Shown piece by piece: positions 1 to 32,302 of a stretch of 64,000 bases of DNA. The stretch's first letter is position 1. Each line of letters starts with the position of its first letter. Source of the DNA: Azolla caroliniana (taxonomy: Eukaryota > Plantae > Polypodiophyta). Both the position numbers and the translations under genes were made by a program. Location: the NCBI GenBank assembly GCA_043228905.1, contig JBHGNT010000010.1, positions 3,100,001 to 3,164,000 on the forward strand. Reading direction: 5' to 3'. The notes below the pieces were generated by a model that did not search any database, had not been told where the DNA came from, and saw only the letters and a list, made by a program, of their open reading frames with translations.

Positions 1-1649
1 GACTTGAGATCAAATAAAAATTAGACCCATTGAGGGCCTACTTTTTCAACATGTCGTCAATGGATCAAAAGGAATTGGGGACACTTCTTGAAGGCAAAAC
101 AACACCAATGGTATCGTCAAGAATTGGGATGAAATCAAAGTAGCATGCCAACACGTCAATAAGAGAAGGCAATGGTATAGGGTCATTCAAACAATGGATT
201 CAACTTCTATAAGAATCTAACTTGGGGATCTCAAGATCGTAAAATATCGCTATGAGTTTGGCTTGTAGTTGTTGATCCGAATAAAAGAAGGAAAAGGAAA
301 GGTCTAAAAGATGAAAAATCAGTCAAAGTGCAAATTTGGACTCCAACGAATTAAGTAGGTGACTTGATCAAAGACAACATAATCATTACCGAAGCAACCT
401 GCCAAAATTCTTGTTATAGTCATAACCTTAGGAACCAATTCTAAAGCCTAATTTCAATGGTTTAAGGGTAAGATAAGTGGGAAACCAATTACCTTAGGAA
501 TTGGGACAAACCCATAATGACCTAGGAGTACAAGGGAGTTTGGGAACCTAAAGATTTGGGCTATATAAAGGGAGTTCTAGCAACCCCCTTTACTACAACA
601 TCTTGAGATGATGTTGAGATATTGGTGAGGCAAATCTTTCTTCTTTCATGTCCATTCATCTTAACTTCCATGGTTTAACAAAAGGTACTATTCGGTCATA
701 GTGGATGATGATGATAATATTGAATGTCCATATCTTGTCCTTCATGTACGAATAGTCAATGTGGCCAAGCACCTTTAAACCATTCATTTCTCAATCTAAA
801 TACTCATTGCTATCATTAATTCTCAACAAGCAAGACAAGAAATAAGATGGAGGATTCAGGAATATGGGAAGACCAAAGAAAATAGGGATAAAGTGGCCAC
901 AGAAAGGCCAAGACATAAAGAGAGAAAGGAAACAAGATGAATAAGACATCAACAAAGAGTCAAGAAGAAAACCAAAAATAGGGAAGATTTCATTTGAGGA
1001 AGCAAAATTGGCCAAGAATTAAGACTTTGATAAGTTGGGATGGTCTAGTCAATGACACAAGAAGCGTTGTTGAAACTTCATACCACAACTAAATTGTGCT
1101 CAAAGAAGAAAAGACGGCCATATGTTAGACAAAATAAAAGGAGAAAAGGGGGAGGGGGTGGTTAATAAAGTGATGTAGATTGTCACGCTTAAATCAAAAG
1201 AAGATGAGAGAACTCAAAGTACGAGCTTCTTTGAAAAAAATGTGAAAGTGTAAGTCTTAAAAGGAGGTGTGTGTAGAGGAGGGTGAGTTGGAAAAAGAGG
1301 AAAGATTGGTTATCTCCATACAAAGGGGAATCTAGCAAAGATGTTATACATGCCAAAGAGAAACTCAATTGACAATTCAAAAGGGATTGCCAAGGAATTA
1401 TGTACAACATGATATAAGATGTCACAATAGTTAATCAAATTTGCAACACCACGACATAATTATGTATGTCAATTGTTCATTTGGATGGAGACAAAGGAGA
1501 AGGATCGTGTAGTACTCAAACTAGCATTAACGTAAGCATCAGTAGTGCAATTGAACATCAAGTTAGAAATTCATGCAATACTACATTTAGAAGCAACATT
1601 TACCCAATGATAATCAAACATGTGATAGTGTGTAAACATACGAAATTAT

Positions 1650-4600
1650 AATTTGAGTTAGAAATGCACCTCAATCATATCTTAATGTAATCAACATGTG
1701 TGAGAGGAGGATGTGTGCATGCCCATACCTATCAATGAATGTGGAGAAACCTAGAAGTAACCGTCAAGCGGAGTGGACATAGCTTCATTGTTATGTTACA
1801 TTTCTGCCATATCAAGGGATTAAATGTGATCATAACTTCTAGTGTTGTTCTACCAATAAAATATCAACTAGTTAGCTAGTTGGCAGATGTACATCATGCA
1901 AAAATGACAACTAATGAATAAAGCAATGCAAGACAATTGAAAATATATAATGGGAAGGGACACATCCTTCTATGGGACATTCCATCAACAAAATTATAAA
2001 GAAACTAGCCACTATCAAAGGGTAGACAAGTTGGTTTGTAGCTTGTAGGGGGGGCATAATGGAGTGAATAACACATTTCTCTTGTGGATATTTAGTTCTT
2101 CTTGTTCAAGGGCTAGATGTTTGCAACAACTATTTGAATTTACCATTTTCACGATATGTAGATCGATTCATAGCACTTCATAACAAAGGTCACTAGCACA
2201 AACATTTACACCCAATGAAATTATACGTTGGATATGTCATGTAGATTTTTCTTGTCATCTACATATATGCTTCTATTAGTAAAAGATATTTAGCAAGTAT
2301 TCTTACAAGTTTGATTACACTAGTTACAAGTTCATGTAATCTTCTATGTCAGACTCTTGTTTCTCATAGGAAATTGATCATTCAAAAGATTTTTTTGATA
2401 TTATTGTTGATCAACTTAGACAACCACACAAATTCAAATTAGAAACAATATCACTATATATAGTTTACATGTGTGTAAATACTCTTACATGCATGAATGC
2501 ATGCATACATACTTATTTGCTTACATGTATGTGTGTGTGTGCGCGCGCTTCTAAGGATGTGGTGTCTTTTAGCATGGGAAATTTGGAGCTTGAAAAGGAG
2601 GGGCCAAGACGTTGTCCACCCCTAGTTAGCGTTTTTAGAATAAACAATTTTTAAAGTTTTTACCTTTGTAAAAATATGCATGTAGTACCAATTTTATGCA
2701 AAATGTTGCTTTTGTTGAACCCACATAATTTGATTGCTTTAGACAAGAAAATGGTGTGGTCTTCCACGTCCTTGAAAATAATATATTATAATGCCTTCCC
2801 CACTTAAAGATGAACAGAGTTTTCTTAATCTTATTGTTGAAGCTTAAACCTAATCAAGGATACATAATTGTCAAGGATGTCTCAATCTTAAGTAATTAAG
2901 GATACATAGTCAAGGGTGTCCCAATCTCGAATAGTCAACTATAGATAGTTTCTCATACAAAGGCAAGGGTGCACTCTCCACCTTGTCTTTCTGGAAACTC
3001 TCTTGAGACTATATATGAGTGGTGCACCATCTCAAGAATATGCCATTGATCACATAGAAGACCTTCATTCAACTTTTCCTGCAATTTCATTGATCTTGCT
3101 CACAAGGAGCATATCATCAAAACTGAGAATACAGATAACTTAGGCGCATCATAGTTTGACCAAGTAGTGTAGTCCGATTGGCTCGTGAATTGTCCTCATT
3201 GTCAATAGATTTATGCATAGCTTCGGTGGTTTCGTGATTAATTTCTAGAATGTAGAAATTTCCCTAGTGTGCATTTAGGTGTGGCAATTCTTTATGAATA
3301 AAAGGATGACTACCAAGCTACCTTCATCTATCTTCTTCATACAAAGTCAGTGATTATCTTCACTTCATCTGTACTCATGGGAGTCGGGACTACATGAATG
3401 CATCGAACTTACAATATTATACGCCCATCAAGTTTGCTTGAAACCTTTGGTAAAATCACGTGTGCCTTGTGGTTATGCAACACATAATTGGGATTTATAT
3501 TTTATATGAACTTGAATTGCATGGAACCAAATCCCCCACGTCTCATTTCATGTTTTAATGCATTCATTTATAGATACTTTAGCCTTCTACAACTTGCACC
3601 TATCATGACACATGATAACATCTTCATTGCATGAAGCTCCATAGGTCAACATCGTAAAATCCAAGTTGGGCACAAATACTTTAAGAGGATGAAACACAAA
3701 ATTTCCATACTCGAAGACAAGTCCATCACCATCCATTTGTTTTACTTAGATCGTTATCTTCACAAGAGAAGGTAATTGTCTCATATCTTTTAACAACAAA
3801 ATTGATCTAACTAGTATATGTACATATTATTTTTATGCCATGATGGTCGTTGTAAAAATGTACACTACCATGTTTATCATTGTCTTGGAGAACCAATCAC
3901 AGTGGGTGTAACAAGAGAGGACATGACGAAATTAGTAATCTAATTTGGAACTTGAGTGCTCTAATTAAATACATGGGCATATGCCATGTAAAGAGTATAT
4001 CAATATCATCGTGTTCACGTGATTGAATAAATTTCACATAATCATATTTTGATTTCTCTTTGCTATCCATAGTGGAATTTGATGCATCTTCGTAACTCTT
4101 CGCATTGTTTTTATTCTTTTATGTCAACTTGAGACATTCATTATTTACATGGTCTTGCTTGTCACAAATAACTCATCACTTGCTAGAGTTAATTCCATCA
4201 TGGAACTCGCCTTGGAATAATAACAAACTAGCAATACATACATTTCCACTAGAAGATGCTATGGAGAGCTTGTTAACTTTGTGTTGGAGCTATTGACTAT
4301 GTTGTTAGGTGCCAAATTATAAATGGCCATGTGAAAACTGCATCATGATTTTTGCAATGAACATAAAAGAAGCATGCCTTTAATGGCATCTTCTACATGT
4401 TTTGCATTTGAACAAGTTTGTTGTGTAAACATGAAATTGAAATCATTGATGTGTGCCATTATATATGTTCTAACTTGGTTGTTCAAATCAAGTTGTATTG
4501 CTTTGTTAGTAGCTCTTTCATATTAGTCCTTGTGAGTGCCATACAAAAGCATGTAGGATCCAATAAGTGCAAATTGGTCATGGACATAAACATATATACC

Positions 4601-4700
4601 CCAACTCGTGACACCTATACACTTGGGTCTCACCACCATCAATTATTTAAGTTTATCATACCAAATCCATAACTACTTAGTTCAATAATAGAAAGGAGAA
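1650..4700 (-). mobile_element. Highly degraded Ty1/Copia pol remnant
   Basis: Minus-strand remnants include an IYVDD RT motif (~2254-2268), a KAHV..PK..SKLD-like integrase C-terminal segment (~3430-3470) and a DG..EY-like integrase segment (~3700-3745). There are many stops and no LTRs were resolved; boundaries are approximate. Confidence 0.5.
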
Positions 4701-6259
4701 AGTAGGTCTTCTATGACTCTAAATATGTGGTATTTTGTGTTAAGGATGTCACCTTTCTCACAAATAGGTAATATACAAGAATGTTTTTAAGAGAATCAAT
4801 TCTCTTCAATTTGGCTAGTTTCTTCCCTAGGCAAATTTGACCGGCTAATGACATCATACTTGTAATAATAATGTCAAAAGGTAACCCTCGAAGGTAACAT
4901 TTGTTTATTGCTTAGGATGATTTCGGATGGGAGTATTAAATGGCTAGTGAATTAAGAACAATTATTTGGAAATTACTTACTTCAAAGCGAAAATGTAGGT
5001 GATGGACGAATTAATAGATGGTTTAGAACTTTCTCCAACAAGAAAGTTTTTAACTATTTATCTATGCATTGACAAAGACACTAAATTTCTTCAAGCTAAA
5101 TTTTTTACCTATTTATCTAAGGATTGACAAAGACAGACACTCTCTCTTGGGTCTTTTGATGCGTGTAATCATCAAGGTAGGAGCCACTTTTTGTCCCATT
5201 TTTTGTTTAAAACAAACTTAGAAATGCCCTTTACCTTAACTTTAGGGCTAAGAGGTTATGAAATATTGAAAGAACATTCAAATATTTTATACAAATTGTA
5301 AGACTTTTTGTTTTGTTTTGTTTTGGTTTTGAAAGAGTCGGATGAGTGGAGTAGTGAGGTACGAACAAAGCTCGAATGGGGTCACATACAGAAAACCAAT
5401 AGATAAGAAAATAACTCTCTCTCCCACACACACTCGATATCTCTCACATTTTTCTCTCTGTCTTGAAGAACCCACCTCTCCTCATATGTTTGCCACAAAG
5501 TTTAGCTTTTGTAGGCATGGTGGAGCACCCTTAGCTAGGTGCAATGGATGTCATACAACCATTGATCAGATTGTAATTTTCTTTCGTTTCCCTAATCTTC
5601 GATTGGCGTGATGGAGCAAGCATACGTAGCTAAGTGCAATTAGGGATATAATGCATTGTAGGCCCCATAGCTCTTTCCTAATGTTCCTTACAATGAGCAA
5701 ATATCACACATGTAGGAGCCTTTAAGGTGGGTCAAACATATAGGGACGAGCATGCCCGATCTTGTAGATGCAAAAAAGAAAAGTTGAAACAAAATACGCA
5801 CAAATACGTGCAATCAGATTTGGTTCCTGGCTGAGCCTCGAGACTATATCCCGCTCGGTTTTTTGTCGTACAGTTGTTTCACATGGTTTTACATGCATGT
5901 GAAGGTTGAAACTCAATGGCAACTACCCCTAACATAACACCCCATTTGTTGAACGGGCTCCTTCAGACAAACGGGGTACGAGGGAGGTTCTTTTCAGGAT
6001 ACGAGGAGTCAAGGGGCCCATAAAAACAAGGATCCGGATGGATGGCAGCTGCAAGGGGTTATCCTGCATGCACGCGAGATTCTGTGTTGTAGCTTTGTTT
6101 CAGGCAAATGTCAAACAATCTCAAAGTGAGATAGATAAATAGGTAGATAGATTGAGTGAGTGAGATGTTATTCTGGATGTGAGGGTTGGGCGAGAGGGGT
6201 TGAGATGGAATGGGTGGGCGGGTTGTCCGGCATGGATTGTCCATCAATGGGTACTACTG

Positions 6260-14822: not shown

Positions 14823-15576
14823 TGTCGCGTTGTTACGCGCGTGCGTGGAGAAAGGCGGGACCACGGGGGTCTTGGACTAGAGAGGGATGGAGCGTAGGAA
14901 GTCGTGCTTCACTGCTTCTGGGGCATCTCAGAAACACACCGGAAGCAACCGAAGGGAGAGAGAGAGAGAGAGCGTGCTTAACACTGACTCATGCACACAC
15001 ACGCACACACACCCCGACCCGACTCATGCCCTTATGTACAGGAAACGCAGGAAAGGGGGGGGCACCCGACACCAACATAGACGCGAATATACACAGACAG
15101 ACGCAAACATATATATAAATGTATAAATAGAAGAATACAATCCCGGCTTCGACCCGGACTGGAGTAGGTTACAATAGTCGTCTACTGCCAAGCCTCCGTC
15201 GAGGAGCTCTCAGCTCGTCGCGCCGAGCGGGGTCTTGCACAGGAGGCCGAACCAAAGCAAACCCTAAGCAAACACGCAAAAGGAGGAGAAGAAGAACCTA
15301 ACTCTAAATCTAACAGTATACCCTCTAATGCAAAATGGGCAACCCTTTTACAAAGGGCGTTCCCTTCCTTTTATAGAACAAGGAAAGGGAGGCATTACAA
15401 TGCGGGACAAATCCCGACTTACATGGGATCGTCTGTCCCGACTTGACTACTCTTCGGCGCCATAAAGGCGCCCTCGATATTCACACTAAATGTACATGGG
15501 TGCATACACACGCTGCACCCCGCCGATGTAGCCAATGTTTCCCGGTTTTCGCCTATGGCCGAAATTCTTCACGACA

Positions 15577-15592
15577 TCCGCCCCCACCTAAC
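15577..15592 (-). promoter_or_regulatory. Polypurine tract of outer element (GTTAGGTGGGGGCGGA)
   Basis: Abuts the 3' LTR; identical to the PPT of the inner element at 29073-29088. Confidence 0.85.
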
Positions 15593-17457
15593 TGCACATC
15601 CACCGGTATGTGCCAAGTCCGGTTGAAGGGTGAGAGATTTCGGCCGGTGAGAAACCGGTCTTCCGTGATCCGCATCTCGGCTCGCTGCCGGTTTGATCCG
15701 TCGGCTTCAAGTCTTCCTTCGCGCTCGCCTCCCCGTAGGCTCGTTCGACCCGTCGATGGGTCCTCTGCCACGATCTCCGTAGTACGCGTTCTTCCGTTGG
15801 CCCTTGTTCGGCCGTATGAACGCCCCGCTTCCCGCCATATGCTTGATGTCCTCCGCTTGAGGAATGCCCGTGGCAACCCGCTTGGCCTCCGTTGTTGAAT
15901 CGTGATGTTCCGATGGTGTTTCGCGTTGCCTTCGTCCTTCCGCCGCCACCTTCCTTCTCCGTGGTCTTACATCGCCGCGTCGGCTCGAACCGCCATGGTC
16001 TCCGGAACGGTGTGGAGGATCCCTTTCCGACGTTCTCCGCGCTCGCCTTTCCGCTTCGGCACCTCCGTGTGCCATGTACCCTCGCCCGTTGTTTGGCACT
16101 GCCTATGTCACACTTCGGTTTATTGCACGCCTCGTCGGCCCCTTTCCGGCCAGATCGTGCATCGCCGCTCACCCGCATACCGGTGTCCTCTGCATCCGAG
16201 GAACACCCCGTAGTAGCCCGCCTGGCCCTTCCCGTCTTCGTGCTGCTGCAACAGGTCCTGAGTCTTCCGCTTGCCGTCGTCCCCTCGCCCCCACCAGCTT
16301 GTCACCCTGGCTTGCCGTGTCAGTCTTCGTTACTTCGACGGAGCTACCGAGATCTACGAAGCGAGTGTGGAGGATAATCCTCCGGCCTCTCTTGCCATCC
16401 TGATCCCGACCCTGTGCAGTCCACTAGGCACTTGTCACTTCGTTCTCGGCACCTCCCTTGTGCCGTCTTCCGCTTCCTTCGTTCGGCCCCGCCCGCTGTC
16501 GTGAAGAAAACCGTCCACGAGCGGAATCGGTGCGCCGGAGCATAGGAACCGGCGCTTCAAGCACGTACGCCTTACGTTGTACATAAGAGAGCATTAGGGA
16601 CATAGAGGATCCTAGGTAGGTAGATTCGGTAGGTAGGAAGTTATTAGGAAACGGCTCCTTCCTTGCCTATAAAAGGAGGGAGACGAGGAGGGGGAAAGGG
16701 GATCGCGGAGAGTCGAGGACGAAGTGTTGTCGGTTTGTGGGCGAAGGCTTCTCTCTCTCTCTGGCTCGCAAACTCCATAGCTTCTTTCTGTGCAAGTTTC
16801 GGGAGGCTCGCGCTGCTCTGAGGAATGCCCGAGTGCTTCCGGCCCGAGGGCTCCACTATATATAAAGAGGTTATATCACGTGCATTCATGACATCTTTTA
16901 TAAACCCCTTATACATATGTTTTTTACTATTTTAGATACCCTTCTGTGAAAAAAGGACTAATAAAAATACCCCTTGGGGCCAATATATATTTTGAAAATA
17001 ACTCATTTTAAATGCCCTTACATAAAAGATACATGTATGTTTTATACATGTGTGTGTGTATGTATGTATGTAATATATTGTACTGCATATGTTGTATATA
17101 TTTTTATGTATGGGTTGTGTGTGTGTGTGTGTATGTTTCATATGCATGTATGTATTATACTGTATGTGTTGTATATTTTTGTTGTATGGCATGTTTGTAT
17201 GTATCTATGTGTTGTGTGTGTGTAGTGGCTCCTATCTATTGGACCTAAAATCATAAATATTCTTTTACTAATAAAGATTGAATAGTTCATTATTTGGTTT
17301 GATCGATATTCTCTATTTAAACTTCATGAAATTTCATCAACAATCATCATGAATACTCTATCACTACAAGAAGTTCCTTCAAATGCCCAATTATTTCTCA
17401 CATCACAACATTATTTAACAAGGAAAAGATTAATATATGACTAATTAAATATGTGAA

Positions 17458-17562
17458 GCTTATCAAGCAATATATGTGCTATATGGGTCAAGCCACATTT
17501 GACATACATATCAATCACACTATTGGCAATACAACATTTCTTTCTAGTACATCTTTTCCTTA
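17458..17562 (-). pseudogene. Single PLS-type PPR motif fragment
   Basis: Minus strand reads (K)DVLERNVV / IANSVIDMYVKCGLTHIAHILLDKL with one frameshift, matching the PPR consensus VVGNALVDMYAKCG...A..VFDKL. Confidence 0.65.
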
Positions 17563-19058
17563 GATGATATAGTTCGCAACAAACACATGCAAAACCAACT
17601 TGCTATGATAATGAAACACCGAAGGTTCAAATAATGTTTCAAACAAACAATAATTCATTAGACGAGAGGAAAGTAATGGAAACAATTCTATATTACAACA
17701 CATACAATTATTTATTTATCAATCTCCTCCCTTTACAACAAGTAGAAATCAAGACCTTACATTCTCATAATGATGTAGCACTAAGAAAGATGAACACAAT
17801 GTCACTTGATAATAAAATCCAAGGACACAATCAGTGAAGAGTAAAGTGGGTGTGATTCGATGAATAAACTCCAACTTGGCTTCAAAAATGTGAAGTCAAG
17901 GTCATCGCGATCAAAGTGACCATATGTAGGGATCTTCTTGCAATGTTTGCTTCTGCCTCTGTGAAGCTTGAGGTGGATAGCCATCACCCCAGGTTGGAAA
18001 TGATTGGGATTGGGGTTTCCTAAAGTAAAAATATTTCTCATCATTTCCTTTCAATTTCAGGAATACAAAGGAAACACAACGAATACATTTTCCTAAACTA
18101 TTATACATTCCTTGACAAATAAGCACAACCAAACTTGATTTCTACTAAGCTCCTAAGAAGAATCAAGTTCAATATTTTCTCATGACTTTATTTGCATGGA
18201 AAAGGAGAAAACATGCAACAATGAGTGAAGAACAAGGCTCAACATCCACCAAGGTCACAAGACGAATACATACCTGGACAATGGGACGATGAGCAAGTCT
18301 TGCTGCAACAATACTCTTCACAAGTTGCCTCACAATGTAACATCTACTCCAATCAACCTAAGTAGGGTCCTTCCCAAAGGAAGCACCGCCACCACGAGCT
18401 CCCCACGAGGCTTCTTAAGACAAAAAGAATTTTTCTTGCCTATGAAATGACAATAACAAATACACAAATTAACATGGAAAAAAAAACATGAGAGGGATAG
18501 TTGCCAATGCATGTGTATATGTTCATATATGCATTAACATACACACACACAAACATAACCATGCATATGAAAATACATATGCACACATGCAGACATAGAA
18601 ACATGGTTAAAAATTGATATGGTACTAAACCAAGAACCCTCGGAATGAGGTTTGGATCCTGATGGCAACAAATTCTGCCTTTCTTGTAGCTCATCTTGCA
18701 CATCCTTACTTGCTAGAGAAGGGCCACTTCAAAGAGGTCAATCACAGTCATGGCTCTCTCTCTCTCTCTCTCTCTACTCTTTGTCTCTCCCCTTTTCCCC
18801 CTACGTCCAACCCCCAACCCCATTTCTTTCCTTTTTTTTTTAATTGATAAGAAATCCTTGCTCTTGAGACACACTAACTTATGCAGAAGAACTAATCATA
18901 CTGTCAATACATGGAAAAGGAAATTATAGATTGTCATTACCAAAAAATTGGCATGGGCAGAACAAAGAAAGTGACTCATTTCAAAATAGCCAACGCACAC
19001 CAACAATGCAATGTATTTGTAAGCCTCGGTTGCCTAAAGCATACAATATAATTTTGGC

Positions 19059-19728
19059 TCATGCCACAACAGGTCCAATTGTCTTGCCTTTTTTCCTTTG
19101 AATCTTCTTTTGTTCTAAGAACTCAAGCTCCTTGCCTTCAAGAATATAACCATCAGCTCTACCACATTGACCTGGTCGAGAAGATATGCAAGCAAGCAAA
19201 CGACCACTGGAAAATTGATCTTCAAGGTGCTGGTCCAATTTCCTCTCCTTGAGTCGGTCAACATTTCTATGGACAAAATGATTGCTTTTCTTTGCCTCTT
19301 CATCACTTGTAACAGGTGTCTCTCCTTCCTCAGATTCGGTCTTAGTAGCAATAGCTTTCTTTTTCTTCCCCAAATCTATGCCATAATGATTGTTCTACCA
19401 CGTGTGGAAGGGTGTGGCATCAACTTGAACAATTGCAGATTTCACCAAAGTTTGTGTTCTAACAAGCTCATTGTTAGAAGCATTGCAGACAACATCTAAA
19501 ATTTGTGTATGAAATACAACCTTAGATCCCCATGAATACTTTCCAATATCGAGTCTTAGAGCTCAAAATTTCAGATTTCCACCATGCGCTCGGATGTTCC
19601 TGATTGTTTTGTTGCTCGACAGCTTTGACATTGCAGCTTATCCTCTTCTTGCACCTTGTCTTCTTCTTGCCTCCTGTGCCGCGCCTCTTGTGTGTTGAGT
19701 CTCGAGAGATACCAATCGTTGTACCCAT
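19059..19728 (-). pseudogene. RPS8: Processed pseudogene of 40S ribosomal protein S8 (eS8)
   Basis: [80 protein letters not shown]. No introns, two in-frame stops, and a frameshifting deletion after KKR. A10 tract at 18832-18841, about 220 nt past the stop. Confidence 0.93.
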
Positions 19729-19781
19729 CGCTTCGTTGCAGGAGGTCGAAGAGGCTTCTCTCCATTGACGCAGGAAAGCAA

Positions 19782-19820
<39 letters not shown>

Positions 19821-19939
19821 CTTTCTTATATTCCCCCCACTTTTTTGCTAAAACACTAACACATACATATGTATCTAATCTAGTAATCTCCCCCCCTTTC
19901 TTCCCCCATTTTTTCAAACAATTGGCGTTTTAAAAATAG

Positions 19940-22900
19940 CGTGTGTATGTATGTACATATGTTTTATACATGTGTGTGTGTGTGTGGTCACATGCATGTG
20001 TATATACTTTGGGTATGTGTGTATGTGCTCTCTGTACATGTGCATATGTATGTATTGCATTCCGTGTGTTGTATGTATTGTGTGTATGGCATGTGTATAT
20101 ATAAGTATGTGATATGTGTGTATGTTCTACATATGTATGTACATGCATGTATGTGTTATGTGTGTGTATGTTGTATATATGTGCATGCGTATATATGTAT
20201 GTGGTGTGTGTATGTATGTATGTACAAGATTGTATTGTATATATTGTGTGTATGGCATGTGAGTATGTATGGTATGTGTTATGTGCTTGTGTATGTTCTA
20301 TGTATGTGTATATGTATTATATACATATAGCATGTGTGTATGTATGTGTTATATGGGTGTGTATGTTCTATATATATGCATACGTATTGTATTGCATACA
20401 TATATATATGTATGTGTTGCGTGCATGTAATGATGTGTATATGCATGCATATACATATTGTATTGCATTGTATAATTTTGTATCAATTGCATTATTGTAT
20501 ATATGCATTGTATGTATGGCATGTGTACATGTGTATGTATGTACATATTGACATATTGTATTGTGTTGCATGTGTTGTATGCATGGCATGTGAGTATGTA
20601 TAATGTATCTGTGTGTTATGTGTGTGTATGTTCTATATATGTGCATATGTATGTATTGTATGTATGGCACATGTCCATGCACATATGTATGTATGTGCTA
20701 TATGTGTTTGTATGTTCTATACATGTATGTGTGCATGTCTTCTATATATTCTACATATGTATGTATGTATTATGTATTGTACATATATAATGTGTCTATG
20801 TATGTATGTGTGTATTTTCTATTAATGTACATATGTATGTATTGTATTGCATGTGTTGTATGTCTATATGAAAGTATTGTAATTTGTATGAGCTTGTATG
20901 ACCTATACATACGGTGATATGTGGAATATCTATGTATGTGTATGCATATATGCATGTGTCAAAGTACATGATTTAATGTGTCTGGATGTGTGTTTATAAT
21001 ATGTGCATAATGTATGCATGCATGAATGTTTAGTATGAATGTATGTTATGTATGTATGTGCACATAATGTATGCATGCATGAATGAATGAATATATATAT
21101 ATGTAATGTATGAATAAAATATGTATGCTTCAATGAATAAACATGAATGAATGAATATATGAATGTACATATGTAATATGTAATGTATGTATATTTGTAT
21201 GTGTGTGTGTGTGTGGATATTTGTTTGTAATATGTATGTATGTGTATGTACATGTAGCAATGTATAAAAGATTGTATGTATGTGTATGCATATATGCATA
21301 TGCAAATGTACATGATTCAATGTGTATGGATGTGTGATTGTAATATGTGCATAATATCTATGTATATATATGTGTATGTATATGTAGCAATGTATAAATG
21401 AATATATGTATGTCCATGTACGAATGTACATATGTGTATGCATATATCCATATGTAATGTGTGTGTATGTATAGAAGACTATATGTAGGTGTGTATATAT
21501 ATACGTATGTGTGTATATATCTAATATATGTATGTCTGTACGTATGTGTATGTACATGTAGCAATGTATAAAATACTATATGTATGTCCATGTACGAATG
21601 TATATATGTGTATGCATATATGCATATGTCATGTATGTATGTATGTATGTGTATGCATATATGCATATGCAAATGTTCATGATTCAACGTGTATTGAAGT
21701 GTGATTGTAATATATGCATAATATCTATGTAGATATCTGATGTATATATGTGTATGTATGTGTAGCAATGTATAAATGAAGATATATATGTCCATATACG
21801 AATGTACATATGTGTATGCATATATCCATATCTAATGTATGTATGTATACATACACGTATGTATGTATGTATGTATGTGTACGCATATATCCATATGACA
21901 ATGTACATTATTCAATGTGTATGGATGTGTGATTGTAATATTTATGTATATATCTAATTTATGTATATGTAGACAGTAGCAATATATAAATGAATATAGG
22001 TATGTCCATGTATGAATGTAAATATGTGTATGCATATATATACGACAATGTACATGATTCAATGTATATGAATGTGATTGTAATATATGCATATGCAATG
22101 TATGTATGTACACGCATGAATGTACAAGTATGCATGTACATATGTATATATATGTAATATGCAATGCATGCATGTATGTTTGTATGTGTAATAGTGTACT
22201 ATGCATACATGAGTGTGTTCATAATATTTATGTATGTGTAAGTATACATGTATGTATTGTAGTCTGTGATGAAATGTATGTATGTATGTGTATGTAACAT
22301 ATTTATGTGTATGCATGTATGCAATGTATGTATATATGTGTATGGATGTATGTTTGTAAAACTTTTAACATTGTAGGCATATGTACATATATATATGGTG
22401 ATATGTGGAATATGTATGTACATATGTAATGTATGTATGTGTATGCATATATGTATATGTCAATATACATGATTTAATGAGTATGAATATGTTTGTAATA
22501 TGTGCATATATATCTAATGTATGTATGTATGTGTGTGTATGTGGTCATATATATGTAAATGTATGAATGTATGTACGTGTATATATGTAATGTATTTATG
22601 TATGTATATTTTTGGGATATTTTCATGTTTAGTACATATGTATTTGGCTCATATATGGATGTATGTTTGTAATATGTACGTAATATGCATGTATATATCC
22701 AATGTATGTGTAAGTATACATATATCTAATGTGTGTGTGTGTGTGTGTGTGTGTATGTAAGTATTGTGGTTTGTATGGTCTAGTATGATCTATACATATG
22801 GTGATATGTAGAATATGTATGTACATATGTAATATATCTATGTATGTATATATGTAATTTATGCATGTGTAAATTTGTATATTGTGTAATAAGTATGGAT

Positions 22901-24151
22901 TATGTGCTATGTAATATCTAATTTATTTACGTGTAAGTATACATATATCTAATGTGTGTGTGTGTGTGTAGTATGTATATATATAAGTATTGTGGTTTGT
23001 ATGGTCCAGTATAATCTATACATATATATATATGGTGATATGTGGAATATGGATGTACATATGTAATATGTCTATGTATGTATGTATCTATATATGTATA
23101 TATGTAATTTATGTATGTGTAAATTTGAATATTGTGTAATATATGCTATGTAATATCTAATTTATTTATGTGTGTGCACGTGTATATATATTTAACTTGT
23201 TTGTAAGTATGAAGATTTGTATATATATAGTATTTAATCTTAGCCTTTAGGTGTTAATATGTATGTGTATGTGTATACATATATATAATATGTAATTTAT
23301 TTTTGTGTGTTTTGTATGTATATATGTATGTAATATGTAATTTTATTGTATGTATTATGTACATATTTACATATGGTAATATATATTTGTACATATATTT
23401 ATGTTTAGTTAATATGTATGTATAAATGAGTGTAATGTATGTATATACATATTCATGGATGTAGGTATATATGCATGTGTGATGTGTGATATATGAATGT
23501 AGCCTGTAGGTATATATGCATGTGTGATGTGTGTTATGTTTGTGTGTGTATGTATGTACATATTGTATTGTATTGTATGTATGGAATGTGTGTATGTGTA
23601 TGTATGTGTATATATATTATATAATATGAATTTTATTTTTTTTGTGTTTGGTTTGTATATTTGCATTTGTATATAATTGTGTGTATAATAATAAATGTGT
23701 GTAATATGTAATATATAAAATATGTTTGTAAGGAAGTGTATGTATAAATGTAATATGTAATTTTAATGTATGTATGTCAATATATATGGCCAATTCTAAT
23801 ATGTATGTAGTATGTAATGCATGCATGTATGTGTATGTACATATTTACATATGGTAATATATATTTGTACATATGTAATATATAAAATATGTTTGTAAAG
23901 AAGTGTATGTATAAATGTAATATGTAATTTTTATGTATGTATTATCTATATATGTATGTCAATATATATGGCCAATTCTAATATGTATGTAGTATGTAAT
24001 GCATGTATGTATGTGTATGTACATATTTACACATGGTAATATATATTTATGTTTAGTCAACATGCATGTATAAATGAGTGTAATGTATGTATGTATAATA
24101 CATATTCATGGATGTAATGTTTGAATGTAGGTATATATGGATGCATGCATG

Positions 24152-24183
<32 letters not shown>

Positions 24184-24195
24184 TGTATGTATGCC
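19940..24195. repeat. 4.3-kb low-complexity TATG/TG/TA array with higher-order repeats
   Basis: Direct reading; a related short block lies at 17030-17225. Confidence 0.95.
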
Positions 24196-24759
24196 ACTTC
24201 AAATTTGAGTATTGTTTCAATAATATATTCTTCACTATCTCATTGAAATATCTAATATTTCATGGGCTTATGTAATTTTTTTTAAAGCATAATTGATAAT
24301 ACCCTTATGTAAAAATATTTTCAAATCTTTATTAATACCCTTATGTATATATATTATGTATCTCACTGATTAATTAAAACCCCTTTTGATGAACTCACGT
24401 GCTATCATACAAGTTTTGACAGTGAAGTCCCCGGGGCTTCCGGCAGCACCTCCAACCTGCTCCTTTCTTTCTGTACGTTTACGAACAGGCATCAGCATCT
24501 GTTCGCCGGCCTGTTCGGTTGTAACCGACTTCGTGTTTTTGTTGCTTTCGTGTTCTTGTTGTTGTCTTTGTTAATACATACATACATTCGTGTCTCTCTG
24601 TGTCGCTGTCCCACTCGCGTCTTTGTGTCGAAGGGCCGTGTCCTTGTGAATCTACGCTCGCACGTAGTGGGTCTCTTTTCCTTTCTCTCTTGCTCTTCGG
24701 TACAGGACCCCCGAGGTCCCGCCTCATTCCACGCATCCGCGAGGAATACCTCGACATCT

Positions 24760-24777
24760 TGGTGAACCCGACGTGAA
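24760..24777 (+). promoter_or_regulatory. Primer-binding site complementary to tRNA-Trp 3' end (TGGTGAACCCGACGTGAA)
   Basis: 3 nt after the 5' LTR; reverse complement TTCACGTCGGGTTCACCA matches the 3' end of plant cytosolic tRNA-Trp as I recall it. Confidence 0.8.
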
Positions 24778-24799
24778 GGAGGCGGCAGAAGAGCAGAAG

Positions 24800-25614
24800 A
24801 TGAAAGGGTCGGATCTTGCGGAGGCCATGGCTTTGGCCGTGGATCGGATATTGAGCACACGCGAGGGCTCCGGCGCCCTCGACAGAGCCATTGAGGCGGT
24901 CGTCGGTACGATCGGCCAGTTCAGCGGAAAGGATGCCACGAAGTATTTGGCGTCCTACGGGGCAGAAATGCTGATGCGGGACATTCCGGAAGAGAGGCGT
25001 CTTGCCGGGTTTCCTCGAGTGGCGATGCCGAGCATCCATGCGGAGGTGCTCGAGGTCCGGGCGGAGAGCCGTACCTGGGAGGAGTTCGAAGGCCGACTCC
25101 TGGAAAAATACGGGTTGGACGACGCGCTCCGGCTTTCGAAACGAGACTTCATGGAATGGGTGGAGTCCCCCGGCAAGGGAAGAAACGCATCGGCACTCCT
25201 CCGGGAGTTCGAAGAACGCTTTGCGCGCCTTTCGGCGCTTGACCGAACCTGATGTCCATGGACTTCTATAAGAAGGGGAAGTGGCCGATCAACACCAAGC
25301 ACGGGTGGAAGATACGCGCGGCGACGCGCACCACCGAGGAACTGCATGGGGCCTGCTCGAACGTGCGAGTCAAGATTGGCGACGTCGAGATTGACCAGCA
25401 CTTCTTCGTACAGGAGACGTCCTCGCACCCGGTCATATTAGGGGAACCATACATCACGGCGGCGCGAATGGAGACCAAGGTGCTGGACAACGGTTCGGCC
25501 TACGCGAGGGTCAAAAGCCAGGACGGGCGCCATTCGGTCCAATTTCTGACGGTGCGGACGAACCACGAGCGAAACCGCGAATCCCTCGGTGGCGAGAATC
25601 GGGAGGATTTTTAG
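24800..25614 (+). pseudogene. Inner Gypsy gag (24800-25249, truncated by internal deletion) and C-terminal part of the aspartic protease (25252-25614)
   Basis: Gag-like FSGKDATKYL...TWEEFEGRLLEKY; protease C-terminal HFFVQ...PVILGEPY. The catalytic DSG region is missing at the 25249 junction. Confidence 0.75.
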
Positions 25615-28600
25615 AAAGGGCTGCCAAGGCGTGGGGCCGAGACAGCCCAGACACTCGGAAAAGACCCCACGACTGTACGATAGAACCGAAACCGAAGGAA
25701 CCCTATACAATAGGTAGGAAATTTTGCTTCTCCGACAACGGAGGGTGTATGATAGTCGGCATCGTTGGCCGAGAAAAGACAAGGGCAGAAGTGCGACTTC
25801 GAGCGTGCGGAGTTCTCGGCCCGGACGAGGAAATCAGCGGAGCCATGGAGGCGGTCTCCTTCGACGACACCTTGGGAATGCTGAGGAAGGTAGCCGGAGA
25901 AGACCTTAACGAAGACCGGATGATACCGGTATGTTCCGAAGAGATGTACGAAGTCATCGCGAACTTCAATCGAGGGCTCGGGTCGGATCGGACGGCCCGA
26001 GTTAGCACAAAGTACAAGACTGTGGACCGGAAGGTAAGGCCAGTCGCGGCACCCTTACCGGAGGGTAGCGAGTCCCGAATCAGAGGGGTTCCGTCGAACC
26101 CCAGTTTACGAGATCCGGCCTGCATAGGACACACCTTCACCGACGGGACGCTCCGGGAGCTCAAGATCGGTGGGGGCGGGTTCCTACTGCTGGCGGAGGA
26201 AGACCGGTTTCGGAGAATGCTCGAAAGTCACGGGAAAGCCTTCGCATTCTCGCCGGAAGAGATCGGGTGCGTAGACCCGACAATTGTGGAGCCGATTCCG
26301 GTACCGCATGTGCCGTGGAATCTCAAGCCGATTCCGGTACCAAGAGCTCACATCCCGGAGTTGATGGAGCTACTGAGGCAGAAAGTCGATATGGGCATTC
26401 TCGAACCGTCGAGTGCCCCATACTCGAACCGATGGTTTACCGTACCAAAGAAAAACGGAATGTTGCGCTTCATTCAAGACCTGCAGCCGGTCAACAGAGT
26501 GACCATTCGGAACGCAGGAATCGGACCGACCATAGACGAGTTCGCGGAGGCCTTCGCCGGAAGGTCGATTTACTCGGTCGGTGATCTGTACTCGGGGTAC
26601 GACCAGTTCCAGCTAGCCGTGGAGAGCAGAGACATTACGACGATGCGAACTCCCCTCGGCCTAGTGCGAATGTGTACCCTGCTGCAAGGCAGGACCAACT
26701 CGGTGGCCCACATGGTGAATGCAATGAACAAGGTACTGAGGGATTGCATCCCGGACATCACCATGCCGTTTCTAGAAGACATCTATTTCAAAGGGTGCCC
26801 GGTGGAAGAGAAGGACGAGACAGTCGGGCCGGACAGATGCCGGCGGTTCGTGCAACACACATCGACGACTGCGAGAAGGTGCTACAAAGGCTAGAGGATG
26901 CGAGGCTCACCTTCTCCGGGGAGAAATCGGCCTTCGGACAATCAAAAATCCTGGTGGTCGGACACCTGTGTGGACCATATGGCCGGAAGCCGTCGCCGGC
27001 AAAGGTAGAAGCCATCTCCGCGATGAACACCGACTGTAGCTCGGTTACGGGTTGCTGAAGAAAGGGCGAAAATTCGAGTGGCGAGACGAGCACACGGAGT
27101 CGGTCCGGAAGCTGAAGGAAGCTCTTGCGGCAGCACCGGCGCTCCGGAAGGCTGTCTACGGGAAGGGTACCCCGGTATACATAACGGTGGATACGAGTCC
27201 AACCGGGATCGGATGGGTCGTCAACCAAGAAGACGAAGACGACATTCGGTTCCCGATCCGATTCGGCGCAAAGGTCCTCAGTGAGCGACAGCAAGGGTAC
27301 GCCTAGGTTGAACGCGAACTCTGGGGTATCGTTTCGGCAGTAAAGGCCGACAAAGACTACCTGATCGGGACAGAAGTGATTATCGAGACGGATTGCCTGC
27401 CAATTCTCGGCATGGTTTCCGGATGCGCGACACCGGACCTGGCGATGCTCAGGTGGATAGCGTACATCAAGTCCCTGGGCCCGGAAATACGGCACATTTC
27501 CGGAAAGGACAATGCCATGGCCGACATGCTTTCGAGGGCGAGGTTTGATGACGAGGGCGGCATGGTTTTGGAGGACGAAGAAGTTGGCGTGGACTTCTTC
27601 GAGGCGGCGTACGTGACGACCAATGGGACGAGCACTCCGGCACTTAACGACTTCGACGAGAGCAAGTACGACGGCGAGTGGCTCCGAATCGGTGGATTTT
27701 TTAGGACAATTACGCCGGATGCGTCATGGACAAAGGACGAGGCCAACCGGATCCGGAAGAAAGCTTACCGATTCTTTCTCCGGGACGGATACTTATGGAA
27801 GCACCCGAAGAAGAGGAACGACGTCCCGCTCCGGGTGGTGGCGATGAAGGAAGAACAGGAGGAGCTGCTGACGGCCTACCACGACAGCCCTTGGGCTGGA
27901 CACCGTGGAACGTGGGCCACGTTCGAGAAGATAAAGGGGAAGTACTGGTGGCCGGGACTGTACCGGGACGTGCATCGGTTCGTGACGACTTGCGAGAGCT
28001 GTTAGATGCACTCCATAGTCCGACATCGGGACGAGCTTCACCCTACGTACCCTCCGACCATCCACTTCCAATGGATGGTAGATCTGGTGACGATGCCGAT
28101 GGGAGTAGGACAGATGCGGTATCTGGTCCTAGCTCGAGAAGATCTGACGAACCAGGTGGAAGGCCGAGCCGTTTAGAAAAAAACGACCGCGGCCGTATGT
28201 CGGTTCCTGATCGAGGACGTGATATGCTGGTACGGGTGCGTCGGGAAGATCGTGGCTGATCACGGGGAGTTGGACGCCGAAGAGGCCGAGGAGCTGTTCG
28301 ACCGGCTAGGAGTCAAGCTCTCGCTTACCACTGCGTACAATCCGGAGGCGAATGGAAAGGTGGAGCGCGGACACGGACCGATCGTCAAGGCGTTAGTTCG
28401 GGCATGCGGAGGTCAAGTCGGGAACTGGCCGCGGCTGCTGCCTTACGCGTTGTGGGCTGACCGAACTACGCACAGTTCGGTAACCGGGTTCATGCCGGCA
28501 GAGCTCATGTTTGGGCAGAAGCCGGTCATGCCGATGGAACGTACGATCTCCTCGTGGCAACCGTGGACTGGAGAGACGAGATGAGCCGGGAGGAACTGCT

Positions 28601-29015
28601 AGCGGCGCGTATACCACAGCTCGAGCGAAGACCGGAAGACGTGGAGCAGGCTGCGGAAAAGCTTCGGGAAGCAAGGATGAGGAACAAAGCCCGGTTCGAC
28701 CGAACACACCAGCTCCGACCGAAGAAGATCGAGGAAGGCGACTGGGTGCTAGTCTACGACAGCAGCCTCGACAACCAGCACCGAGCGACACGGAAGTTCG
28801 CAAGAAGGTGGTTCGGGCCTTACGTGGTACAAAGCGCCAACGACAACGGGACGTACCATCTGGCGGAACTCGACGGCACGAGAGTGGCGATACCGGTAGC
28901 TGGGAAACGGATCAAAGCGTTCAAGAAGCGTCACGACGACGAGCCGGATCCGGTTAACTTGGACCGGGACGACGAACGATCCGAAACCGAGGAAGAACCG
29001 ACGGGCGGGGAATGA
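25611..29015 (+). pseudogene. Inner Gypsy pol (RT-RNase H-integrase), disrupted
   Basis: PSSAPYSNRWFTVPKKNG.LRFIQDLQPVN, DLYSGYDQF, FLEDI (YXDD position), ITVDTSPTGIGW, HDSPWAGHRG..CESC, AYNPEANGKVERGH, RRWFGPY. Stops at 27304, 28003 and 28174 plus frameshifts and deletions. Confidence 0.92.
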
Positions 29016-30669
29016 AGGCTGGACCGGTTTTCTCCGTCCCAACTCAATTTGGCGCATGCCGGTGGATGCGTGGTTAGGTGGGGGCGGATGTCATGAAGAA
29101 AACCGTCCACGAGCGGAATCGGTGCGCCGGAGCATAGGAACCGGCGCTTCAAGCACGTACGCCTTACGTTGTACATAAGAGAGCATTAGGGACATAGAGG
29201 ATCCTAGGTAGGTAGATTCGGTAGGTAGGAAGTTATTAGGAAACGGCTCCTTCCTTGCCTATAAAAGGAGGGAGACGAGGAGGGGGAAAGGGGATCGCGG
29301 AGAGTCGAGGACGAAGTGTTGTCGGTTTGTGGGCGAAGGCTTCTCTCTCTCTCTGGCTCGCAAACTCCATAGCTTCTTTCTGTGCAGGTTTCGGGAGGCT
29401 CGCGCTGCTCTGAGGAATGCCCGAGTGCTTCCGGCAGCACCTCCAACCTGCTCCTTTCTTTCTGTACGTTTACAAACAGGCATCGGCATCTGTTCGCCGG
29501 CCTGTTCGGTTGTAACCGACTTCGTGTTTTTGTTGCTTTCGTGTTCTTGTTGTTGTCTTTGTTAATACATACATACATTCGTGTCTCTCTGTGTCGCTGT
29601 CCCACTCGCGTCTTTGTGTCGAAGGGCCGTGTCCTTGTGAATCTACGCTCGCACGTAGTGGGTCTCTTTTCCTTTCTCTCTTGCTCTTCGGTACAGGACC
29701 CGCCTCATTCCACGCATCCGCGAGGAATACCTCGACACCGCGCCGAACACCGTCCCGTAGTCACGCTTCGATCCGGCCCGCGATGGCCACTTGCGAGACT
29801 CTTGTTCTGCCCAAGGTGTGCCTTTCCGGCCTGACACACCTCTCCGTGTTTGCCCTTACCGGCTTCTTCCGAACCTCGTGTCGTTGGGTCCCGTTCCCTG
29901 CCGCCACCGTCCTTCTCCCTCGGTCTCACGTTGCCACGTTGGCCGAACTGCCGGAGTCTCCGGATCAGTGTGAGGGTCCCATAGGACCAGACTCCGTTTC
30001 TATGCTTGCCGAAACTCGGGTGTCTTTTCTTTGAGTCCCTCCTGGACTCTCCTCGTGTCTTCCGCGTAGCCGGGTCCCGTTTCCCACCGCCACCTTCCTT
30101 CTCCCTCGGTCTCACGTTGCCACGATGGCAGCACAGCCGGAGTCTCCGGAACCGGTGTGGGGATCCCGTAGGACCGGACTTCCTTACGCCCATTGTCTTC
30201 GTCACCTCGCCGCCACCGTCAGTATCTTGGTCTTACGTCAACCGTGTTGCCGACTGCCGAAGTCTCTAGAACCGGTGTGAAGGATCCTCCGTCGACCGCC
30301 CTTCCGTAGCCCTTGCCTTCGTCACCTCGCCGCCACCGTCAGTATCTTGGTCTTACGTCGACCCCGTTGCCGACTGCCGAAGTCTCTAGAACCGGTGTGA
30401 AGTATCCTCCGTAAGGAATCGCCCGTCCATTCTTCGCCCTTGTCCGTAGCCACCGACTCTTCGTGGTCGGCGGTCGTCTTCTTACCGATCGCGCAAGCCC
30501 CGTCTGGGTTTGCTTCTCCAATGCTCGGGATCTCGGGCTGACACGCCCGAGACCGCTGGTCCCAACATTCCGGTTCCGCGATCGGTATCTCGGCCTCGTC
30601 CTTGGCCGTTCTATTTCCGCAAGTCGAGAGGGCGTTTCGTTCCGCACCCTCTCCTGTGGTACCGTCGTA

Positions 30670-31491
30670 TCAATCTTCCGCCGTCGCGTGGGGCAAGTCC
30701 ATCTCCTCGGTCTCAGCTTCTGGCCTCGATCCTCCCTCTTCCTCGAGCATCGCTTTGAGCATTGCGTACGCCTCCGCAATCCTGGACCCAACGCCGACCC
30801 TTGCCGACTCTCTTTGCCGTTCGGCCTCTTCCCGTTGTGATGGCACGCCGTCGCGTACCTTCCTCTTAGCCTTCTCGGCTCGCTCGTTGTCTAGCCTTTG
30901 GCACACCCTTCCGACCTTCGACCAATCCTCCGTAAGCCCATTCGCTCCATCATCATCTTCGAGCTCAATCCCGATGGCTTCCCGTTCCGCTCGGTCGATT
31001 GACCTGACGAACAAAAGGACTTTGTCCGCCCCCACCAAACCTTGTTCCTGCTCTGGGAGCCGAGCAAGTTGTCGCTCGAACTCCCGGAACACCTTCGTCG
31101 CACCCCGGTGGGTCTTTGCCGATGCTACCCACTGGTCGAAGTGGTGCCGTCCCCAGCTCTTCCGCCGTCCTCCGTATGCTTTCAGGAGCGCCTCTTCGAA
31201 GGCCTCCCACGAACTATGAGCCTCACAGAGCTCCTTTACTTCCGCACGCATCCGGACAGCTACGACCCGGCAGAAGAACTCCAGCCTCAACGCCTCGTCT
31301 ACGCCACGCTCCTCCATTTCCGCGTTGTAGGCTCCCAAGTAAGATGGGACTTTGTCCCCGTTGAAACGGCTGACTCTTTCGACCACTCGCTCAACCGCTT
31401 GTTGCGCTGCTTCTCGCCTCATCACCACTCGTGCCGACTCCAACACCACTTCGGCCACCATCTCCGCAAGGTCGTCGTCTTCCGACTCCAT
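30670..31491 (-). CDS. Gag-like ORF of outer element, 273 aa
   Basis: Starts just after the PBS. AVERVVERVSRFNGDKVPSYLGAYNAEM aligns with inner gag AIEAVVGTIGQFSGKDATKYLASYGAEM; SWEAFEEALL with TWEEFEGRLL; FREFERQLARL with LREFEERFARL. Confidence 0.8.
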   Translation of the reverse strand: MESEDDDLAEMVAEVVLESARVVMRREAAQQAVERVVERVSRFNGDKVPSYLGAYNAEMEERGVDEALRLEFFCRVVAVRMRAEVKELCEAHSSWEAFEEALLKAYGGRRKSWGRHHFDQWVASAKTHRGATKVFREFERQLARLPEQEQGLVGADKVLLFVRSIDRAEREAIGIELEDDDGANGLTEDWSKVGRVCQRLDNERAEKAKRKVRDGVPSQREEAERQRESARVGVGSRIAEAYAMLKAMLEEEGGSRPEAETEEMDLPHATAED

Positions 31492-31506
31492 CCTCCCTTG
31501 CCGCCT

Positions 31507-31524
31507 TTCACGTCGGGTTCACCA
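31507..31524 (-). promoter_or_regulatory. tRNA-Trp primer-binding site of outer element
   Basis: Same 18-mer as 24760-24777 in the opposite orientation, 4 nt from the 5' LTR. Confidence 0.8.
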
Positions 31525-31668
31525 AATATGTCGCGTTGTTACGCGCGTGCGTGGAGAAAGGCGGGACCACGGGGGTCTTGGACTAGAGAGGGATGGAGCA
31601 TAGGAAGTCGTGCTTCACTGCTTCTAGTGCATCTCAGAAACACACCGGAAGCAACCGAAGGGAGAGAG

Positions 31669-31700
<32 letters not shown>

Positions 31701-32302
31701 CATGCTTAACACCGACTCACGCACACACACGCACACACACCCCGACCCGACTCACGCCCTTATGTACAGGAAACACAGGAAAGGGGGGGGCACCCGACAC
31801 CAACATAGACGCGAATATACACAGACAGACGCAAACATATATATATGTATAAACAGAAGAATACAATCCCGGCTTCGACCCGGACTGGAGTAGGTTACAG
31901 TAGTCGTCTACTGCCAAGCCGCCGTCGAGGAGCTCTCAGCTCGTCGCGCCGAGCGGGGTCTTGCACAAGAGGCCGAACCAAAGCAAACCCTAAGCAAACA
32001 CGCAAAAGGAGAAGAAGAAGAACCTAACTCTAAATCTAACGGTATACCCTCTAATGCAAAATGGGCAACCCTTTTACAAAGGGCGTTCCCTTCCTTTTAT
32101 AGAACAAGGAAAGGGAGGCATTACAATGCGGGACAAATCCCGACTTACATGGGATCGTCTGTCCCGACTTGACTACTCTTCGGCGCCATAAAGGCGCCCT
32201 CGATATTCACACTAAATGTACATGGGTGCGTACACACGCTGCACCCCGCCGATGTAGCCAATGTTTCCCGGTTTTCGCCTATGGCCGAAATTCTTCACGA
32301 CA

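Follow-up and report, generated by a model that had tools for sequence, protein, structure and literature searches.

A recently moved non-autonomous transposon inside a fern retrotransposon, very probably a member of a divergent P-like family

In a 64,000-bp stretch of the genome of the fern Azolla caroliniana (GenBank assembly GCA_043228905.1, contig JBHGNT010000010.1, positions 3,100,001 to 3,164,000; hereafter the window, to which all coordinates refer unless a contig is named), a 7,593-bp insert at 16843-24435 interrupts the 5' long terminal repeat (LTR) of a young gypsy element. Our findings demonstrate that this insert is a genuine, recently moved DNA transposon without an enzyme of its own, and they make it very probable that it belongs, as a non-autonomous member, to a divergent P-like family whose autonomous copies share its left terminus. 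The element carries fragments of host genes, some of which recur in copies at other sites, along with a decayed retrocopy of the ribosomal protein gene RPS8 that is private to the window copy.

The insertion site places the arrival of the element after that of its host retrotransposon. As the first-pass annotation of the window had proposed, the insert lies in a very young LTR and is bounded by an exact 8-bp target-site duplication (TSD), GCTTCCGG on both sides, with the empty site preserved in the 3' LTR (Table 1). Without the insert and one duplicate, 4 substitutions in ~649 bp and a single 10-bp indel separate the two LTRs, which are ~0.6% apart. The duplication in the window copy, and only there, can also be read as 9 bp, because the first base of the element is identical to the next base of the flank. 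Among the contigs listed from the read data, which were contigs and not raw reads, none bridges a junction, and the loose ends of contigs at 16843 run on as LTR sequence, representing other LTR copies without the insert. It is hardly conceivable that the insert is filler from double-strand-break repair or an assembly artefact: the want of junction-bridging reads would fit such an origin, but the exact duplication and the inverted termini are of the same type as dozens of ends with unrelated flanks.

The host gypsy element itself (within 14823-32302) is nested in an outer LTR element of opposite orientation, whose LTRs (14823-15576 and 31529-32302) are 95% identical and whose LTR end and primer-binding region resemble those of the inner element. 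We considered the 10-bp LTR indel as a possible excision footprint and rejected it; the related LTR ends of the outer element retain these 10 bp, so the 3' LTR (at 29698, against 24710-24719 in the 5' LTR) has lost them by a deletion flanked by CCC microhomology. The 7-mer CCCGAGG occurs twice in the window, once as the left terminus and once within the 10-bp indel near the LTR end, and this match between the transposon terminus and the 5' LTR is a coincidence.

The two ends of the insert are organized symmetrically. The left end reads CCCGAGGGCTCCACT and the right end, reverse-complemented, CCCGGGGACTTCACT, an inverted match of 12/15 that bears out the 15-bp imperfect terminal inverted repeats (TIRs) described earlier, and a degenerate pattern of the terminus, CCCGRGGNCTYCACT, has exactly two exact matches in the 64-kb window, which are the two ends of the insert. 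Across related copies the 15-bp terminus consensus is CCCGGGGGCTYCACT, also written CCCGGGGGCT(C/T)CACT, from which each window terminus departs by one transition, and in all 47 family ends the first two bases are CC and the third is C or T, most of them reading CCCGGGG. The CCCG termini reported at first are real in the window copy; the family terminus is CCCGGGGG, of which the window copy's CCCGAGGG is a one-base variant. Inside each TIR, at exactly 19 nt, stands the motif CACGTG-NN-TTCAT, in mirror orientation at the two ends and as symmetric as had been claimed; it is a candidate transposase binding site. Short subterminal repeats, given earlier as ataccctt, are present at both ends as ACCCTT or ACCCCTT, in direct rather than inverted orientation.

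A multicopy family became accessible through a protein word search with a small open reading frame (ORF) of the left arm, which led to ENA metagenome contigs holding host plant DNA. The first of these align to 16843-17891 at 84-92% identity, and one early contig (L005) has the left terminus beside an unrelated flank. When the metagenome collection was scanned for the degenerate terminus spaced by 19 free bases from CACGTG, 46 contigs matched; every one belongs to a single ENA project of plant-associated metagenomes, and unrelated metagenomes gave no hit. These contigs contain 32 left-type and 15 right-type ends, among which 41 flanks are distinct. Two left/right pairs share an exact 8-mer flank in 465 comparisons (L014/L058 with ACCTTTAT and L046/L025 with GGATCTAG), against 0.007 expected by chance, and the second pair is compatible with an 8-bp duplication only, not with 9 bp. 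The many ends, their different flanks and the two exact 8-mer pairs, which supply paired ends with an 8-bp TSD in these metagenome contigs, uphold the earlier description of a recently mobile non-autonomous TIR family. Contig depth summed over three DNA runs is very high on the LTR. Within the insert it is 4,000-5,600 over the leftmost 900 bp, falls to 1,000-2,000 as far as ~18727 and is only 80-300 over the RPS8 region; the left arm is covered tens of times more deeply than the single-copy parts.

The insert contains no ORF with any transposase signature, in agreement with the first-pass annotation, and a copy encoding a DDE transposase was found elsewhere. A subgroup of left ends with the terminus CCCGGGGACTCCACT shares only the first ~190 bp with the window copy, and in three of its contigs (L015, L048 and L019) this terminus is followed by an intact ORF of 1,122 aa, with a 270-aa ORF upstream of it, both reading toward the left end of the element. 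All three have intact ORFs, lie in different flanks and agree with one another at 99.5-99.9% over 4.5-5.6 kb, and near-identity at three sites indicates recent transposition. The two ORFs are most likely exons of one gene of ~1,390 aa, because ORF1 can be aligned with the N-terminal part of a homologue 1,423 aa long (expectation value, E, 5e-9) and the gap between ORF1 and ORF2 ends in a pyrimidine tract and AG. Kilobases of TATG repeat, previously listed among the cargo, are indeed present in the insert; these TG/TATG repeats are a trait of the whole family and not cargo, because autonomous copies also have them. TG-rich tandem repeats of ~73 bp lie directly upstream of transposase exon 1 (L019 1-450; L048 7040-7360). 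Another contig, L023 (3351 bp), is an internal-deletion derivative of the autonomous element that retains three blocks of the 6-kb element, and it shows how non-autonomous copies of this family arise.

The transposase of these autonomous copies is all but invisible to profile searches, and its class emerges from its conserved residues and predicted fold. A word search returned 92 homologues at 29-56% identity, all labelled 'hypothetical' and almost all without a Pfam domain, from ferns (Adiantum), liverworts (Riccia, Calypogeia), a brittle star (Amphiura) and other eukaryotic assemblies. A full-length homologue at 38% identity comes from the brittle star Amphiura filiformis; the occurrence in brittle star and liverworts, unannotated throughout, points to an old or horizontally spread lineage. 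Five motifs are invariant across 30 homologues, AEDET, C..H.C, HASDGDSRRRK, DQDxIHNxKK and GSDxCExFFS, and DQDxIHNxKK provides a D-x2-H motif after the second aspartate. The fern enzyme accordingly appears, from its residues, to carry a DDE-type triad (AEDET, then HASDGDSRRRK followed by DQDxIHNGKK, then GSDxCExFFS), the pattern of the hAT/P group of DDE transposases, with D389, D509/D511 and E746 as candidate catalytic residues. Its N-terminus, the 270-aa exon, contains C..C..H..H zinc fingers.

An AlphaFold model of residues 340-860 (29 sequences; pLDDT 92.4, pTM 0.92) has as its top Foldseek match the Drosophila P element transposase 6p5a_A (E 1.8e-9, probability 1.00, TM 0.55/0.64), with all other matches at E 3e-3 or worse. 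Structural alignment with VIA-align gave Z 24.8 against 6p5a (root-mean-square deviation 3.4 Å over 346 residues, chain 192-566), compared with 11.5 for Transib, ~10 for RAG1 and 8.1 for Hermes. In the predicted structure a large helical insertion domain interrupts the RNase H core, just as it does in the P transposase, and a language-model search (Atlas) placed the enzyme nearest to clusters carrying TNP-like RNase H and GTP-binding-domain families (0.92-0.95). P elements make 8-bp target duplications (PMC7776569; PMC3698922). The earlier annotation had named P as one candidate superfamily and had been sceptical of hAT, and the fold of the partner enzyme agrees with it on both counts. We therefore regard the insert, with considerable confidence, as a non-autonomous member of a divergent P-like family.

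Several observations weigh against this assignment or against parts of it. Pfam P-element models matched none of the 30 family members at E 0.1, PDB sequence and profile searches with the transposase came back blank, and Pfam found no THAP domain in ORF1 or ORF2, a domain that is reported to be restricted to animals (PMC7776569). The right end of the autonomous element was captured in no contig, all of which break in the TG-rich repeats, and we infer only from the left end that it pairs with the right end of the window copy. The related contigs are metagenome assemblies whose host species may differ from that of the window. Finally, two contigs with both ends (L027 and L028) show no matching duplication; as short reads of a repeat whose core is long and of low complexity are easily misassembled, we regard them as probably chimeric or recombinant, and they were kept out of the evidence.

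The remaining profile searches gave a similar picture: Pfam had no match to the fern transposase at E <=0.1, the curated P/THAP9 models (Tnp_P_element and the TNP-like RNaseH_N, GBD and RNaseH_C domains) yielded no sequence-level match, and the best Pfam hit among the 30 members was a TNP-like GTP-binding domain (TNP-like_GBD) in one member, at E 0.13, a borderline match that agrees with the Atlas placement. A family that belongs to Novosib, a poorly documented Repbase group with 8-bp duplications, rather than to P proper, or a Novosib that is the same clade, would share the TSD length and explain an enzyme invisible to Pfam, since the Novosib nuclease domain, still unconfirmed, likewise has no Pfam match (PMC5751038). 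We consider this rather unlikely, as the fold and the language-model evidence point specifically to proteins of P/THAP9 type; the comparison with Novosib covered its published description. That the insert is a hAT element with atypical termini is highly improbable; its 8-bp duplication, its short TIRs and the short repeats near its ends would suit such an element, but the YARNG start occurs in 0/47 ends, the partner enzyme is without a hAT dimerization domain, and its structural similarity to Hermes falls far short of that to the P transposase. No Pfam family of hAT or Mutator-like elements (MULEs) was found in the partner enzyme or among the 30 homologues. The insert is also very unlikely to be a Mutator-like element or Pack-MULE, having a TSD of 8 bp rather than 9-11, a TIR of 15 bp rather than a long one, and a partner enzyme without a MULE domain.

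We turn next to what the element carries. Pfam and PDB searches identify the exon-like blocks noted at first as pieces of an S-adenosylmethionine synthetase gene, and ubiquitin-RPL40 and RPS27a, which had been candidates for these blocks, are rejected on the same searches. The block at 18262-18439 has an in-frame stop and a frameshift. Synthetase sequence is also present in L028, L029, L035, L040 and L052, and partly in L002 and L004, and the copies carrying it have different flanks wherever flanks are known; the synthetase and PPR fragments recur in copies at no fewer than five distinct sites. The synthetase fragment has therefore been spread by the element, and the comparison of cargo among copies substantiates the earlier view that the family disperses host gene fragments. 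The motif first annotated as a pentatricopeptide repeat (PPR) is a weak match (E 0.065), but its peptide is conserved across family copies, in at least 20 family contigs. Relative to the synthetase-carrying copies, the window copy is without ~650 bp of family sequence between 17891 and 17919.

One sequencing run, X9, bears on both the synthetase and the RPS8 cargo; it is labelled 'DNA?' and is RNA-like, with ribosomal-protein and synthetase contigs at depths of 1,000-4,000 against 5-8 for the rest. Its mRNA-like contig of the parent synthetase gene ends at ~17888. The two synthetase blocks are 259 nt apart (18003-18261), against an expected 99 nt of coding sequence, and an mRNA-like X9 contig skips 270 nt here, with unknown letters between; this segment may be an intron of the fern gene or an insertion. 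A further X9 contig joins the RPS8 3' region to a synthetase exon, skipping a segment bounded by GT..AG, and matches the window at 99% or better (1-2 differences per 166-170 nt). Such a contig is suggestive of a chimeric spliced transcript produced by the window copy or a near-identical copy, the nature of the run being taken from its depth pattern.

The largest piece of host gene had been recorded as a full RPS8 retrocopy, and its identity is confirmed: the coding part matches Pfam S8e (E 2e-13 and 2e-9) and is collinear with an mRNA-like contig, from which the copy differs at ~10% of positions, with at least 2 frameshifts and 2 premature stops. Its standing as captured Pack-type cargo did not hold, for RPS8 was retroposed into one copy and is absent from all others sampled, none of which contains anything from ~18790-19850. 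Contig depth over the RPS8 region is at single-copy level, and run X1 provides near-identical contigs there at depth ~82-86. RPS8 is a retrocopy inserted into the element rather than a product of transduplication, as judged from sequence features: we read it as a retroposition because it is flanked by a direct repeat, because the downstream repeat copy on the RPS8 gene strand opens with an A10 run, and because L040 has a single, unduplicated version of the insertion site.

The state of this retrocopy also dates it relative to the landing. Because RPS8 is ~10% diverged and broken whereas the LTRs are 0.6% apart, it was already inside the element when the element reached the gypsy LTR, and the earlier statement that the cargo is more decayed than the LTR pair, and so came aboard before, is sustained. 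The alternative that the 7.6 kb never moved as a unit, a shorter element having landed and RPS8 and other parts having been added in place, draws on the fact that RPS8 is private to the window copy and hence secondary to the element. We consider it very unlikely given the frameshifts, stops and divergence of the retrocopy beside so young an LTR pair, and given that the direct repeat flanking RPS8 has itself decayed to 77% identity.

Alongside the observed family, the duplication length, the predicted fold of the partner enzyme, the division of cargo into shared and private, and the relative ages, we propose the following history for the insert, which we take to be a non-autonomous DNA transposon of the cut-and-paste kind from a fern family with many copies. 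An ancestral deletion derivative would have gained the synthetase and PPR fragments and then been amplified; the RPS8 mRNA copy would have been retroposed into one copy and decayed there, with ~650 bp of family sequence lost; and the RPS8-bearing copy would have transposed into the gypsy 5' LTR after the gypsy element had integrated. We infer the order of the first two of these steps. Autonomous relatives with the same left terminus as the window copy most likely supplied, in trans, the transposase that moved it.

Further observations concern the family's structure and targets. An internal AGTGAAGCCTAG motif resembling the right terminus occurs at 1041-1057 in L001 and at ~1150 in L006 and L008; L001 and L006 diverge from L008 directly past it, and L002 has a 20-bp deletion across the site. 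As a second right end it was rejected, being without the CACGTG module and with L008 continuing beyond it; possible readings are a relict internal end and a hotspot of recombination. Several family insertions lie in sequence 76-94% identical to the internal region of the window gypsy element (26239-28926), which could reflect target bias or the mere abundance of that retrotransposon. Over the 41 sites, the duplication is rich in G at position 1 and poor in A at position 8. One family copy (L013, 174-183) landed in TGCTTCCAG, a near-identical 9-mer to the window target TGCTTCCGG (16834-16842); we rejected this likeness as meaningful, since only ~10 nt are similar in otherwise unrelated DNA, and treat it as coincidence.

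Table 1. Coordinates of the features discussed, in the window unless a contig is named
Feature	Position	Strand	Remarks
Host 5' LTR, part before the insert	16497-16842	+	resumes 24444-24756
Left TSD copy, GCTTCCGG	16835-16842	.	single occurrence in intact 3' LTR (29427-29434)
Left TIR	16843-16857	+	1 base from family consensus CCCGGGGGCTCCACT
Left arm common to family copies	16843-17891	+	80-92% identity
CACGTG-NN-TTCAT, left	16877-16889	+	19 nt inside left TIR; kept in 32/32 left ends
PPR-repeat-like fragment, in left arm	17444-17602	-	Pfam PPR E 0.065 (weak)
S-adenosylmethionine synthetase fragment, residues ~345-383	17886-18002	-	PDB 6vcz E 1.7e-6
S-adenosylmethionine synthetase fragment, residues ~262-312	18262-18439	-	S-AdoMet_synt_C E 0.0011; 6vcw E 0.007
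Segment skipped in X9 contig	18440-18940	-	GT..AG; joint 18438>18940 (cut +1), record 27
Direct repeat, left copy, 26 nt, imperfect	18818-18843	.	T10 run (A10 on gene strand)
Processed RPS8 copy with untranslated regions	18844-19891	-	coding 19059-19728, almost full-length
Direct repeat, right copy	19892-19917	.	77% identity to 18818-18843
TG/TATG-rich degenerate minisatellite	~19942-24190	+	similar repeats in L027, L028 and upstream of transposase gene in L019, L048
Right arm common to family copies	23854-24435	+	~580 bp, 85-97% identity
CACGTG-NN-TTCAT, right (mirror)	24389-24401	-	CACGTG at 24396, 19 nt inside right TIR; 15/15 right ends
Right TIR	24421-24435	-	1 base from family consensus CCCGGGGGCTTCACT
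Right TSD copy, GCTTCCGG	24436-24443	.	exact match to left copy
Host 3' LTR with empty target site	29089-29737	+	GCTTCCGG once, uninterrupted, at 29427-29434
Gypsy-like flanks of family insertions	L053 4158-4309; L018 1488-1670; L028 1-55		

Compared with the P element/THAP9 group (Drosophila P, 1360, Galileo, zebrafish Pdre), the fern family has the same 8-bp TSD and short terminal repeats, a binding-site-like motif at fixed distance inside them, the D..D-x2-H..E motifs with a third block of E..FFS type in a split RNase H fold, and commonly occurring non-autonomous copies with internal deletions. It differs in its termini (CCCGGGGG against CATGATG in the P element), in motif spacing that is symmetric (19 nt at both ends) rather than 21/9, in an enzyme that has C..C..H..H fingers in place of THAP and no significant match to Pfam P models or PDB sequences, and, unlike the P element, in hosts that include ferns and liverworts besides animals. 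With Pack-MULEs, Pack-CACTA and Pack-hAT it has in common that non-autonomous copies carry and amplify host gene fragments and, as run X9 suggests for the fern family, give chimeric spliced transcripts; it belongs to another superfamily, carries few fragments (a synthetase piece and one PPR repeat), and received its largest gene piece, RPS8, by retroposition rather than transduplication. What defines a Pack-type element, fragments recurring in several transposed copies, is seen for synthetase and PPR and not for RPS8. The same partnership, in which a non-coding derivative can be recognized as P-type solely by the termini it shares with a divergent autonomous partner, is known for BuT5 and a divergent P element in the Drosophila repleta group (PMC3698922), with the difference that BuT5 is a 1-kb miniature inverted-repeat transposable element of insect hosts without host gene fragments.

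P-type transposons are textbook animal elements, and to our knowledge their enzyme is hardly known from land plants. What is new here is a variant and not a mechanism, namely a THAP-less, Pfam-invisible P-type lineage with Pack-like derivatives, and this lineage looks recently active in a land plant. In a recent survey that screened 1,007 plant genomes with Pfam or custom profiles, the recently active TIR elements fell into only seven superfamilies, P not being one of them (PMC12973397). We tentatively raise the possibility that the fern family represents a deep, unannotated branch of the P superfamily, perhaps the same as Novosib, a branch that remains active in ferns and occurs in liverworts and echinoderms as well, with a non-THAP zinc-finger module and CCCGGGGG termini, missed by Pfam-based surveys, and with Pack-like derivatives in ferns that amplify gene fragments and yield chimeric spliced transcripts. 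For the annotation of transposable elements in ferns, whose genomes are very rich in transposons, the family would supply a missing profile; a P-like enzyme without THAP would allow one to ask if the GTP dependence of the P transposase and its unusual, 17-nt staggered cut at the donor site go back to the origin of the fold; and one more superfamily would join those that shuttle host gene fragments.

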